Assembly: GCA_013115145.1 (NCBI GenBank)
Contig: JAAPAO010000236.1
Span: 1-48,970, forward strand
Direction of reading: 5' to 3'
Length of the DNA: 48,970 nt
From: Perkinsus chesapeaki ATCC PRA-425
Lineage: Eukaryota > Protista > Perkinsozoa
In this document: positions 18,701 to 32,300 of the stretch, one piece after another
Layout of the letters: each line of letters begins with the position of its first letter
Position numbering within the stretch: position 1 is the stretch's first letter
Program-made: the position numbers and the translations under genes
Notes under the pieces: generated by a model
What the model was told of the DNA's origin: nothing
Database searches by the model: none
The model's input: the letters and a program-made list of their open reading frames with translations, nothing else

Positions 18701-20640
18701 CACCCGTGTCTCACTAACAATGCTCTGATATACAGTATAATCCCATCCTGTCCCATCAACCCAAGCTAATAAGCCTTACAGCCCCCCACCCTCCCTCATC
18801 ATAAAAGCCTAAACTCACTCCTCACACCGCCCAATTCCCCTCATAATCGAAGAGCCTGCCCTTTCTTATACGTCTTTATGAGATGGCCTTGTATAATCGA
18901 CGGCCTTCCTCCTTTTATAAGCCCTATACATTAGAGTTCGTATTTAAGCTTCTTACATAATCCCCATTATTCTTATTTTATCGTCCCTTGTAACTACCTA
19001 TTGTCGTCATCATCTTCTTCCATCCATTTCTCATCCAATCCACCATTACTACCAGCAACGGCTCTCGCATCAGGTGTAGCAAATCGTGGATCAGCCTACA
19101 CCAAATTAATTATACCATATTTCCCTCAAATCACCTTCTTATCCCTCGATCTCTTTCCCGTTATAAACCGTCCATCCACAGCCTTCCCTTTTGGTTGAAG
19201 GCTAACATGCTGCTCTGGCGGTAGGGACTTTCTCCCTTCTAATGCGTACGATGGAGCCTGATTAAAAAGTTATATAAGTACCAATACCGAACCCGACAAC
19301 AATTCCAAAATATGGACTGATTATCAAATAACCTCCGCTGTCAGTTCGTGAAAATTGGTGAATCGGAACGTAGTGTCATACGCATATGAGTGTCTCTCCT
19401 CTAACAAGAACGACAATGCATCCCATCTGCACCCACAGAGGAAATGCAAAAGGGAGAGCAAGACATCAGAACAAGACTCATAGTACTTAACAAGGTAACC
19501 CTTCTCCCTGAGCCCGTATAAACACTAATTATTAAACCAATGCCATTCAGCTTCTTCCCCTTTTATAACCTGACTAGGTTCCATCAAATGAGCTTTGCCC
19601 TGTCCTGCATGAAGTGGATTATACTCAACTTTAGTAATCTTGTTAATATGAGATTCACGTTGAGTCGCCGCCTGATTCGAAAGATAATAATCGATTATCA
19701 ACCACCCAAATTCCTACAGCAACTTTGGTCGCCTTGAAATCTGCTATCGCAGACAAGTGTGCTTCGAAAGTTTCAAACATATCTAAGGTTCAAGCGTGCA
19801 TTATCTACCCCCCAAAGATACTTCCAACCTCCTCCTGTTTTCCCTTCCTTCACAATCTTATCTACAAAGTCTCCATCAATCTCCTCCATCCTCTTCTTCA
19901 TATACTTGTCATGCACGGAGTCATCCCCATCCAAATTCAACGGGTCCATTGACGGATCCGCGAAATGCCCTCCCGACCTACTTCAAACTATCACCCAGCA
20001 GCAGCAGCGAGGAGTCCTTATCAACAACTAGTGTGTAGAAGCCTGTATTTCTAATTAAAATTATGCTGGAATTACTTCAATAAAACTTTCCAAGACATTT
20101 ATTACCAATAGCATGGTAACCGATGAATTCAAACCCAGGAAAGATGACGTGACACGGTAACCTTGCCACCATTACTATAACATTCGTCGATAAATATTTC
20201 CACCGCATTCTATTTCCTCGAGGCCTTCTCTATTCTCACGCGCCACGAAATACCCCCACCATCCCACCGCAACCCTTTCCCATATCACTTTCTTCCCCGT
20301 TTAGGCATCTCCTCCGTCACTGCGCCACGAAAATACGGATACTTTTCCTTGATAAATTCCTGGCGCTTTTGTTGTATTTTCGCAGTTACATTCGATGTTC
20401 GACTGAATTGCCTGCAAACCAATACAATTTACAGTATAGTCTCAGCTGTACGAAAACGGTAAACATGAATCGCTTCGCTCCGCCTCCCTCTTATTACCGT
20501 ATTTGCGTTAATGCTTGTCTTCGTATAATCGGCGTTGAGCTCATTCCAATAATTCTGACGCGTTTACTAACCCAATGGTCCCGGGTTCAAATCCCACACC
20601 TCACATTTAATTGAATAAATACACGCAAGAACATAATCAT
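15776..20640 (-). CDS. Hypothetical multi-exon gene (or genes) with an acidic tract; boundaries approximate
   Basis: Exon-like segments (GYLVKYYESCSDVLLSLLHFLCG; DREEDEYITDDGDDEF...EEEFSDEDDDDNEEE; GDGFCYLLQVLTEG; a final exon ending LLEYDPGIF* at 15776) are separated by low-complexity introns. No family recognised. Confidence 0.45.
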
Positions 20641-20761
20641 AACGTTGTCAAAGTTTGTCAAGTAGTAAAGTGGTTATCAAATAATAATATGCTCATTAAT
20701 CGAGTCTTAAAAAGCGACAACATAGAATCGATCCCATGACCTCTCCTATAAGATCAAAGCA

Positions 20762-29192: not shown

Positions 29193-29351
29193 GGTATGTT
29201 TCAACGCAATACAACCCTGGTTTGTTATGAAACGCGATATTGCTGCCTGGTATTATTTCTCTCCGTCACTCGCCACAAAACTAGTCCAGCTACAACAGTA
29301 TAGGCGCGCTTCCTTAAAGATGTTCGAAAAAAGATATTTTTTTGTTGTTGC

Positions 29352-32300
29352 TCAGAAAAGATGCTTCTTCTCCACAACCTGTAACTGTCGCCACACATAC
29401 AGTCCTCCAACCACAACAACTATGATACCTGATACAGCAGCGTTGAGGAAATGCAAGATTGCAAGATTCTTTATAAACAGGGTCTACTAGTATGACGCTC
29501 AAATTCAATAAAGATTTCCCCCCAGCATCAAAAACGCAGGAGTTATGCTCATAAGTCCACCCCTAGCAACACCATGGAAGTGCACCCTACTTGATCGAAG
29601 GCACCTTGGATGCGAAAATAAGTCAATAATAATTGGTATAATACTATCCTGAATAGGGTAGCAACTTGCTCATCTTTAAACGTCATAAAATAATTGTTTA
29701 TAGTCCCTCAAATCTCGTTGATGAATAAATCCCTTCCTTCAACTTACAAAGTATAAAAAGCTTATTGGCCAAACTATGGGAACTATTGATCGAGTCCTCC
29801 AAGTCATCAGCATTGAAAAGTGGCCTGCTTACAAAAACGTCAAACATGAATCGCTTCGATCCGCTAAGCTCACCCTTCCCCTCCAGCGTTCACTGATGTG
29901 AGCTGCTCTCTAACCTTCTCTACACGGTCCTGAAACCGATAATTTCGTGGCGCGCGGTCATGGAGCCATGATTACCTTGTGATCTCCAGACTCTCTTGTT
30001 AACATCTCTCGTAAACCGACCATTTGATTCTTCAACGTATCAAGTCCACCCGAACCTGAAAGATTCATTGCCGAAATTCTTCACAGTGCGCAGCAGCGTA
30101 AAGATACCATCGCTCGTCGCCTTTATCTCCTTCCTCAGCTGCTTCATTCGAGATTCCAAATCAACAACTTGGTGAGTGATCTGACCTAACATCAACCAAA
30201 TATACCCAATTTCCTGGCGCGCGAGAATTCTACCCAGCTGGGAATGCATCTTAAACAGCTCTGGTTGAGTTGTCTCAATATAATTAACCAATAACTGTGA
30301 TACCTTCTGTAGCGTTAGTGTTTGCAGAGCTGCGTCATCGCCAACATCGGTTGTCAGTAACTAAATTCATCATGCTCAAACTTAACCATCAAGATTCATC
30401 CTAAGATACAATAAGCCTCTCCAAATGAGTCATTGTAGGAAAATTACCAGCGCCGTTTCAAATTCGTCAATCTTTTCCCCCGAAAACGCCCTACATGTCC
30501 TTAGCGGAACTACACTCATAATCTAGTTTATAATACATCTCATAATATTAGAAATATAATATTTCTATCAATCTGTTTGGGTTGATGGTAGCAAGTTGAA
30601 CTACTACGCCAGTGTCTACTAGAATAAAAGTGCATCAGTAGTTAGCACTACATTAATGACATATTCACACCACACCAGTAAAAAGCAGCCAATGACGTTG
30701 CCGTATGTCATCATACCAACAGTAAAATTATCTATATAATAATACTACTAATACTTCCCTATAATAACATGTCCATGAATGTCGGACTATTGCGCCCCGC
30801 TGAGGTGTCGTCGCAATACCCTTGCAACGTCAACACGCAATACAGTGAATACACGACAATAAAGTATAAACTGTCCCCAATTATAAATAAAGATACAATT
30901 CCTTAGTTATCATAATTTATTTTTAGTTTATAATTAGCGTAATATTTCCCCTTCAACTACCTCCTTCCAATCTATCTTTCCACCATCTGACAGCTCATTA
31001 ACAACTTCATTAACCAAAGCCTCTCCCGGTTTCGACATATCCATATTGTAACTGAGAGCTGTAATTTCGTGGCGCTGCTAGAATACCATCCCACACTTGG
31101 GCGATGAAACCGCAAATCTAATACCCTTCGAGGTTGATGAGAGGTGAATCCACAAATTATCGGGATAAATTACCATTAAAGAAGCCTTTATAACTACTAC
31201 AAACCTTACATCTACCTAGTCCCAATTTTGCACTAAATCGCCAACAACTCCGCCACCAAATTTAAGTCCATTCCCGTCAACCGTATGAACTCGCCCTTAT
31301 CTTCAATTGAGTACTTCAGAAGTTAAGTTCCTTCTAGAAAGTCAAAAAGATTTTCCGAATTAATGTCGAGAGCTTTCAGACTTCCTTACTGCCAGCCAGT
31401 TGTTATAATTAATACCAAATTTCCTACAACTTACACATGCATGTCGATGATAGATACCTTCTCAGTAGGTAAAGATTCGCCACTCCACGAGGTAAAGCCA
31501 ATATATCCACTATTCCTGATTAGATGGGAATATGGTATAAAAATACTACTGATGTTCCTACGGGACGCTAACACCGCCCGCTGAGGTGAGCTCCTGCCAA
31601 TGCCTGCTGCCATCACGATATCGAACCATGATCGTGTCAGGGCGCACACGAATTCCAACCTGGATCAACTTATTGTGTATCCTGCAGGGTTGAAGCTAAG
31701 ATATTACCCTAACATGATCGCCTCCATGAAGATTAACTCTAGATGATGCCCCTCTGTCAGGAACATCACGATCGAAAGACAAAGCACGATCGTTACGATT
31801 GGTAACGATAGAAACTAAGGAAGACCGGGGAAGTTGAATCGACTTCCGACGAATCTTAGCTCGATTGATGCACCAACCACTTACCTGTGTAATCATCACC
31901 CGACGCTCCTTTCGGCGTAAAAACGATACCAAATCCATCGAAACGCGACTAGGTAGGAGAGCGTATCTTTAGGTTGGATTGAGTTTAAATGAAGATACCT
32001 TTTGTCCGAGTATGTTATAGTCGAGAGCGTTGAATGCTGTCCTCCAGTCTTTCTTGTTTTCACCTTTCTGAAGCTCGTCACGAATCTTGGAGAATTCTGA
32101 AGTGTAGTTCATCGTGGTAAACCTGTGAGGAGCATTTGGAGTAACATGATAGGTCGAGCACTTACCACAAGGCAAATCCAGAATCCCGGCTAGCTGAGGG
32201 ACCATCAGTAACCTGAATACAGAGGTATTTTGTATCTTGCATGGTTGAAGCTAAGATACCGAAAGATCGAAGAGTATTTCGAAATCGTTGGTCTCAACAG

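Follow-up and report, generated by a model that had tools for sequence, protein, structure and literature searches.

A 23-nt sequence recurs within introns of four unrelated genes in a 48,970-nt stretch of Perkinsus chesapeaki DNA (the window), and alignment with syntenic DNA indicates that two further Perkinsus species have retained it in the corresponding introns, apparently under purifying selection. Our preferred reading, which we hold tentatively and with somewhat less than even confidence, is that the motif represents a strand-specific cis-element of Perkinsus introns that may act on the pre-mRNA and may spread locally through the copying of short tracts.

A search of the whole window for the 23-mer GCGGAGCGAAGCGATTCATGTTT returned exact copies at 20461-20483 and 26306-26328 as well as inexact copies at 29842-29864 (1 mismatch) and 27859-27881 (2 mismatches), all on the minus strand. 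The four copies listed in the first-pass annotation were thereby recovered with the same positions and mismatch counts. Four matches compare with 0 expected, and 100 shuffles delivered none; a chance origin of the 23-mer and of its core was ruled out by shuffling both the window and the P. marinus sequence. Among themselves, the window copies agree at 21-23 of 23 positions, whereas the 15 nt that follow are only ~60% alike across the four copies, and the identity of the 23-mer is therefore better ascribed to constraint than to recent copying. Two tiers can be distinguished in the family, namely a 12-nt core, GCGGAGCGAAGC, and a larger unit of ~38 nt. The copy at 20461-20483 begins such a 38-nt unit (20446-20483), and in one sub-family the unit is composed of the core, followed by G(A/T)TTCATGTT and then by a block resembling CATTTTYG.

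The four host introns, which are all encoded on the minus strand, belong to genes for a GCV_T-like protein (I1, 20412-20497, 86 nt, first intron), a multi-pass membrane protein termed gA (I2, 26289-26339, 51 nt, first intron), the mitochondrial ribosomal protein L17 (I3, 27739-27885, 147 nt, gene identified by Pfam L17 matches), and an ERGIC-53-like lectin (I4, 29825-29873, 49 nt, penultimate intron). The earlier description of four unrelated host genes with intronic, gene-sense copies 4-14 nt after the donor is thus borne out, the distances from the donor GT to the motif being 14, 11, 4, and 9 nt in I1, I2, I3, and I4, respectively. Of the intron boundaries predicted at that stage, those of I2 and I4 stand. 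The I2 joint is present in RNA contigs from three runs, making this the sole host intron whose removal is seen in RNA, and gA has a 259-aa reading frame once its confirmed introns are taken out. Across the I4 junction the frame is continuous, and the resulting protein matches the P. marinus and P. olseni orthologues. The acceptors proposed for the other two introns had to be replaced. In I1, an acceptor at 20446 leads to an immediate stop codon, and the acceptor conserved with P. marinus is located at 20412, which makes 20446 a decoy; when the exons are joined accordingly, the N-terminus matches P. marinus from residue 16 onward. The RNA data had zero depth over this intron. In I3, an acceptor at 27832 leads to a stop after ~10 codons, and the conserved acceptor delimits an intron of 27739-27885, whose flanking exons code for RQILYEYLVPRYK and DRPYFVTRMLNPFYLRYYDAQQR in both the window species and P. 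marinus. An interpretation as a branch-site or acceptor module, with the core 15-38 nt before the acceptor, was dropped because the true acceptors are 60 nt (I1) and ~130 nt (I3) away. Most introns do not carry the motif, and gB, a paralogue of gA, holds a different motif family at the same intron position. An orthologue search with exon 1 of gA returned solely a junk repeat protein. The lectin and L17 genes are separated by a spacer with a 31-bp tandem repeat, which is interrupted by the assembly gap at 29071-29168 and stays in register on either side of it; the nearest copy of the motif is 657 nt away and no motif-bearing intron is touched.

Further occurrences of the core were found on the minus strand. 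An exact, core-only copy is located at 23079-23090, in a transcribed and unspliced region that follows the stop codon of gB at a distance of ~200 nt, and a variant with 1 mismatch, GCGGAGCGGAGC, is located at 24432-24443, 21 nt before the acceptor of a 367-nt gB intron (24411-24777). A possible core at 32743-32754 (1 mismatch), upstream of the lectin gene, had gone unlisted and emerged from the present core search. The first-pass annotation had also proposed a weak truncated core near 13244; that match is on the plus strand with 2 mismatches and is at chance level, as 2.2 such matches are expected.

The comparison between species covered the window, the syntenic DNA of P. marinus (L003), and that of P. 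olseni (L004), within ~99 kb of Perkinsus DNA in total. All four host introns are found at orthologous positions in P. marinus, and I4 is also found in P. olseni. For three of the four copies, the same introns carry the core in the syntenic P. marinus or P. olseni DNA, with the donor spacer fully or almost fully diverged. The P. marinus version of I2 agrees at 11/12 core positions and at 18/23 positions over the whole motif. In I3, GTAG and the core are kept, together with a donor distance of 4 nt in both species and an acceptor >100 nt away. The three-species alignment of I4 has 19/23 invariant motif columns next to a 9-10 nt donor spacer that is almost wholly diverged. Outside the host introns, the core at 23079 is embedded in TCGGCGGAGCGAAGC, which is identical at 15/15 positions at the orthologous place in P. 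marinus. Summed over the four orthologous sites, the cores of the window and of P. marinus agree at 46/48 positions, as compared with an intron background of 55% in gA, so that the core stands above the neutral intron background. This conservation goes along with turnover. In P. marinus, the I1 intron is present and the element is missing from it as a 37-nt indel; the variant at 24432-24443 is not conserved in P. marinus, and the possible core at 32743-32754 has no P. marinus counterpart at ≤1 mismatch. Conversely, the core is present in introns of the P. marinus L17 gene whose orthologues in the window are devoid of it.

Counting all cores with ≤1 mismatch, 17/17 are oriented in the sense of the gene (seven in the window, eight in P. 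marinus, and two in P. olseni); they correspond to ~11 independent sites, and the eight P. marinus matches compare with 0.06 expected. As all copies are located in one block of co-oriented genes, in which local copying could preserve orientation, the strand bias is weaker evidence than it appears. The 17 cores fall within a single cluster of five or six genes, and no core was found in ~74 kb of other Perkinsus DNA. For copies located in short introns, the distance from the donor to the start of the core is 4-25 nt, mostly 9-14 nt. Exceptions to this donor proximity are the variant at 24432, which is near an acceptor, and the copies located after stop codons, namely the one at 23079 and the pair at P. 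marinus 11094 and P. olseni 704; the cores occupy transcribed sequence in the sense orientation, with I2 removed from the RNA and two sites outside introns. A second motif of the same region, TTTCGTGGCGCG, offers an internal contrast, as it occurs in either orientation; it is found ~80-330 nt from the core in each host gene and is conserved between Perkinsus species at orthologous introns.

Sequence similarity in one orientation among introns of unrelated genes is what would be expected if the motif were a strict introner, i.e., a transposable element that created the four introns by insertion, and such elements are known from Micromonas, Aureococcus, Amoebophrya, and others (PMC9860276, PMC7789003). 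The first-pass annotation had considered an introner family, and the setting is suggestive, as the host is an aquatic protist and Amoebophrya is one of its relatives. Nevertheless, this origin is very improbable. A repeat that makes an intron should span it and supply its splice sites, whereas here the similarity extends over only 23-38 nt after an unrelated spacer, does not include the donor region, and accounts for less than half of I1 and I3 (the unit covers 38/86 nt and 38/147 nt, respectively); in neither of these two introns does the YAG of the unit serve as the acceptor. The introns should also be missing from relatives, but 4/4 exist in P. marinus, where I1 does so without the element, and the paralogues gA and gB have a common intron position with different content in both species. 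The host introns therefore predate the split of the species. In a repeat search of the four loci, neither shared terminal inverted repeats (TIRs) nor flanking direct repeats that would represent target site duplications (TSDs) were detected, and a published screen lists no introners (ie = 0) in any of three Perkinsus genomes, those of P. marinus, P. olseni, and P. chesapeaki. The copies are moreover few and local within the DNA examined, which again differs from introners.

Two further explanations accept that the introns are old. The motif may be a site that acts in the DNA, bound by a transcription or chromatin factor or contributing to a type of intron-mediated enhancement in the introns of a compact genome, with the cluster representing a co-regulated or co-transcribed gene block. 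In both species the cores are confined to a run of five or six neighboring genes, which would agree with this. The same holds for the conserved TTTCGTGGCGCG near the core in each host gene, whose occurrence in either orientation is typical of DNA sites, for the several copies that occupy a first intron or immediately precede a gene (I1, I2, and P. marinus 11094, 11308, and 11557), and for the two sites outside introns. However, a DNA site would have no reason to keep a regular distance from the donor, the copies have a single orientation relative to transcription (albeit within one co-oriented cluster), and I4, as a penultimate intron, lies at a great distance from the start of its long gene, so that we regard a DNA-level role as possible but rather unlikely. 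Alternatively, the motif may be a functionless relic of the 3′ end of U6 snRNA, of the 3′ part of the spliced-leader (SL) RNA, or of a short mobile unit, which has been spread by gene conversion such that its conservation would merely reflect homogenization. In favor of a relic, the 37-nt indel in I1 ends exactly at CAG, the number of cores varies between species within the same gene, the copies are tightly clustered, the unit ends in a T-run like small-RNA genes, and its 3′ half agrees with the 3′ end of human U6 (sequence taken from a paper) at ~14/17 positions. On the other hand, orthologous copies keep the core amid diverged flanks in three species, and the window copies agree in the 23-mer and not in the next 15 nt, although conversion tracts would not stop so sharply. 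Neither terminal repeats nor target duplications were observed, nothing was found by Rfam or ARAGORN, and the U6 match could be due to chance, with a rough expectation of 0.05-0.4 chance matches. A relic is accordingly judged unlikely.

Rfam (gathering score over 83 kb; E ≤ 10 for intron I2) and ARAGORN returned only a tRNA-Gly at 22775-22845 and no U6 hit, which speaks against a tRNA, snRNA, or other known RNA. A tRNA relic is not indicated by the B box (GGTTCGANTCC) either, with which the motif agrees at only 7/11 positions by eye. The motif was also compared with the beginning of the P. marinus SL intron as published; no match was found, and derivation from the SL RNA was set aside as far as that part of the sequence goes. 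A mirtron or structured RNA was rejected after folding seven copies, for which no secondary structure stood out (z-scores of -1.1 to +0.7). A metagenome search gave a single match to the first 20 nt, in a sequence having otherwise nothing in common with the window, which we read as chance in a very large collection.

The preferred reading remains a conserved intronic element that would act on the pre-mRNA. The suggestion of an intronic splicing or RNA-binding element made in the first-pass annotation fits the gene-sense orientation, the donor proximity, and the conservation in three species amid diverged intron sequence. The 5′ splice site usually precedes the element by ~10 nt, and the element would most likely be recognized by a putative trans-acting splicing factor (a protein or an snRNA) that would help to define or regulate these very small introns. 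New copies may occasionally arise when a short tract is copied into pre-existing introns nearby, which would explain the tight local cluster as well as the gains and losses between species; such local copying is supported by the 37-nt indel that brings the unit into the pre-existing I1 intron, by the additional cores in P. marinus L17 introns, and by a CTTA context on the donor side that three copies have in common.

A more specific and improbable proposal is that the unit mimics the 3′ end of U6 snRNA and pairs with the free 5′ end of U2, thereby tethering U2 to the donor. The 3′ terminal region of U6 forms U2/U6 helix II, and sequences of human U6 and U2 are available (bioRxiv 10.1101/2021.08.01.454689). 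The window copies contain GAAGCGAT, which is perfectly complementary to human U2 nucleotides 1-8 (8 bp), and those of P. marinus and P. olseni contain GCGAAGCGTT(T/G)CATGTT, which agrees with GTGAAGCGTTCCATATT of U6 at ~14/17 positions. By contrast, the best-conserved half, GCGGAGC, is without a counterpart in the human RNAs, and the core-only copies are without the U2-complementary part. The comparison was made against human sequences only, which may differ from those of Perkinsus itself, and hence it describes a resemblance. If the mimicry were real, U2 would be tethered by a site ~10 nt from the 5′ splice site, and the ends of a 50-nt intron would be brought together ahead of the tri-snRNP. 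More broadly, Perkinsus micro-introns might consist of a limited set of conserved, exchangeable modules that form an intron identity code.

Perkinsus species are major pathogens of shellfish and the sister group of dinoflagellates, and they combine very small introns with spliced-leader trans-splicing. To our knowledge, little is known about how these introns are recognized. A long, nearly invariant, sense-only element beside 5′ splice sites that occurs genus-wide would thus be a concrete handle on intron recognition. Its mutagenesis would be feasible with the transfection system that already exists for P. marinus, and it could alternatively serve to capture the putative binding factor. It also illustrates that similar sequence in the introns of unrelated genes does not need to indicate introners: here the introns are old, and their content appears to have been exchanged and then kept.

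Intronic splicing enhancers and regulators include the G-runs of short vertebrate introns and UGCAUG downstream of 5′ splice sites. Like these, the Perkinsus element is short, located on the sense strand near a splice site, limited to some of the introns, and better conserved than the intron sequence in general. It differs from them in being 12-23 nt long and nearly invariant, as opposed to the usual degenerate motifs of 3-6 nt, and in being clustered in neighboring genes with a copy number that changes by apparent copying. Other motif families of Perkinsus micro-introns, including a palindrome, a GTATCTT...AAGATAC hairpin cassette, TTTCGTGGCGC, and tRNA relics, belong to the same genome and the same type of tiny intron and are likewise conserved at orthologous introns, as is the case for the GTATCTT...AAGATAC cassette between Perkinsus species. 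Whereas those families are hairpins or palindromes, are located near the acceptor, or occur in both orientations, the present motif is strictly sense, adjoins the donor, and is not palindromic.

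The 23-mer shared by four introns of the window is represented by four matches at ≤2 mismatches, all on the minus strand (20461-20483, 26306-26328, 27859-27881, and 29842-29864; copies 1-4), exactly where the first-pass annotation had placed them, and shuffled sequence gave no match. Its first 12 nt form a core, GCGGAGCGAAGC, which is also present on its own at 23079-23090 (exact) and, with one mismatch, at 24432-24443 and 32743-32754. The two truncated cores previously noticed at 23079-23090 and 24431-24443 are recovered, and a weak one near 13244 matches no better than chance. 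The profile built from the copies has two levels, the core alone and a ~38-nt unit in which the core is followed by a block G(A/T)TTCATGTT and then one resembling CATTTTYG. The longer unit occurs in seven introns: the four hosts in the window (I1-I4, for copies 1-4), their P. marinus counterparts at I2 and I4, and the I4 counterpart in P. olseni; all remaining members consist of the core alone. With ≤1 mismatch allowed, the window has seven cores, the P. marinus locus (21 kb) eight against an expected 0.06, and an 823-bp P. olseni contig two; 17/17 lie on the gene-sense strand. In both the window and P. marinus they are confined to a single run of five or six genes in the same orientation, from the lectin to the GCV_T-like gene; none was found elsewhere in the window, in a third relative (L002, from a Logan assembly), or in ~26 kb of P. 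marinus sequence further along the scaffold.

All four copies are intronic and in gene sense, 14, 11, 4, and 9 nt past the donor (copies 1-4), and their host genes are unrelated, both as originally claimed. The predicted introns I2 (26289-26339, 51 nt) and I4 (29825-29873, 49 nt) stood, and the acceptors proposed for the other two had to be replaced: the one at 20446 gives an immediate stop codon and the one at 27832 leads into a stop. I1, the first intron of the GCV_T-like gene, spans 20412-20497 (86 nt), and with the exons joined across it the N-terminus agrees with that of P. marinus starting at residue 16. I3, in the mitochondrial ribosomal protein L17 gene, spans 27739-27885 (147 nt) as set by conserved exons on either side; its P. 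marinus counterpart measures 121 nt (L003 12017-12137) and contains a B-box-like GGTTCGATCC. I4 belongs to an ERGIC-53-like lectin gene with a KKxx-like tail, whose reading frame is continuous over the junction and matches orthologous proteins. I2 is the first intron of gA, a multi-pass membrane-protein gene. RNA contigs from four marine runs, aligned to 20401-26400, contain eleven minus-strand GT..AG joints, 26289-26339 among them, and removal of the confirmed introns yields a 259-aa membrane protein.

The same contigs have loose ends at 25256 and 25266 that bear the Perkinsus spliced leader (compared with the sequences in PMC3101222). These are the spliced-leader acceptor sites of gB, the tandem paralogue of gA, and the leader variants differ between runs (...CCATCTGGCTCA and ...CCATTTTGGCTCA). 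Past the gB stop codon, a donor at ~23014 (window 23015) is joined to an exon outside 20401-26400 (loose end ATTAACTATTGAAGATGACC), which represents either a 3' UTR intron or read-through into the next gene.

Orthologues were taken from P. marinus (L003, scaffold GG673601.1) and P. olseni (L004); proteins of the window are 61-83% identical to theirs, and the window species is distinct from both. The P. marinus scaffold is collinear with window 33284-16730 (minus strand). In I4, 19/23 motif columns are invariant among the three species, and the donor-motif spacer is almost wholly diverged. In I2, the window and P. marinus agree at 11/12 core and 18/23 motif positions, with spacers of 11 nt versus 25 nt. 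I3 retains GTAG followed by the core in both species, the introns being long and otherwise unalignable. The core at 23079-23090, downstream of the gB stop codon, is identical in P. marinus at 15/15 positions including the three preceding bases; the variant at 24432 is not conserved. Over the four conserved sites core identity amounts to 46/48, compared with 55% for the five gA introns and 75% for gA exons. Since the 23-mers of the window are mutually alike at 21-23 of 23 positions and the next 15 nt at only ~60%, this identity reflects constraint rather than recent copying.

Some further features of the locus were observed. Between protein genes there is a tRNA-Gly(GCC) (window 22775-22845, minus strand; L003 16978-17048), within a 75-nt stretch that is 100% identical (22771-22845 and L003 16978-17052). 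The P. marinus lectin gene (L003 8638-10921) is split in the annotation into three models of 69, 51, and 181 aa, which are bridged by the window and by P0004, a partial protein of P. olseni. Further P. marinus sequence (L005 15201-17309), ~15 kb away from the motif cluster, carries a single-exon 702-aa gene with a weak Integrase_H2C2 match, probably a retroelement remnant. An assembly gap (29071-29168) interrupts a tandem repeat of 31-bp units (AAAATCTTTCGAGTGCGTTTGGTATCTTTTT, 28966-29200) that continues in register on both sides, so it represents an unresolved number of repeat units; being in an intergenic spacer, 657 nt from the nearest copy, it has no bearing on the motif.

Other sites differ between species. 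In P. marinus, I1 corresponds to an ordinary intron of 48 nt that lacks the element, and window I1 holds a 37-nt extra piece from the core to a CAG; conversely, P. marinus has cores, in two L17 introns and at a site past the lectin stop codon, whose window counterparts are absent or decayed. The I2 position is common to gA and gB, and in both species the gB intron holds a GTATCTT...AAGATAC hairpin cassette instead, so the introns are older than the present distribution of the element and their content was exchanged. Because the host introns are old and only partly occupied by the element, and terminal or flanking repeats are lacking at the motif loci, the introner family first suggested is highly improbable; three Perkinsus genomes are listed without introners in a published screen. 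The element also belongs to no Rfam family, tRNA and snRNA genes included, and is neither a structured RNA nor a mirtron.

Perkinsus micro-introns harbour several motif families, of which this element is one. In several short introns (24920-24968, 26099-26146, ~27990) the 3' part is occupied by the hairpin cassette, GTATCTT...CAAGCTAAGAT(A/T), which is conserved in the P. marinus orthologues. The RNA-confirmed 57-nt intron 24265-24321 contains a perfect palindrome of 18 nt, ATCGATCACGTGATCGAT, centred on CACGTG. Another motif, TTTCGTGGCGCG, has 15 matches at ≤2 mismatches (1.9 expected) in both orientations, among them 20239-20250, 20321-20332, 25983-25994, 28174-28185, and 29269-29280 (minus) and 29943-29954, 31065-31076, and 42011-42022 (plus). 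It lies ~80-330 nt from a core in each host gene, matches at 16/16 positions in the orthologous P. marinus gA intron, is retained in three species near 29275, and by eye looks like an E2F-like, DNA-level site.

The element is real, conserved, strand-specific, and intronic. Strict sense orientation, a regular short donor distance, and a motif conserved next to diverged flanks suggest a cis-element that is recognised in the pre-mRNA. We tentatively favour a putative splicing-factor site that would help define or regulate tiny introns and would now and then be copied into neighbouring ones, in line with the splicing or RNA-binding element proposed in the first-pass annotation. A DNA-level regulatory site, the main rival, is rather unlikely: tight clustering, the nearby TTTCGTGGCGCG in both orientations, and two cores outside introns would suit it, but the cores have a single orientation and I4 sits near the end of its gene. 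As all copies belong to one co-oriented block, local copying alone could preserve orientation, a caveat for the RNA and DNA readings alike. A functionless relic whose copies are held alike by conversion seems improbable too.

Among the papers searched, none describes the 12-mer core as an element of this kind. Comparison with human, not Perkinsus, U6 and U2 snRNA (bioRxiv 10.1101/2021.08.01.454689) offers a tentative lead that could be chance once the comparisons made are counted, and nothing there corresponds to the best-conserved half of the core; the motif's 3' half is similar to the U6 3' end, and GAAGCGAT is perfectly complementary to U2 nucleotides 1-8, the helix II partners.
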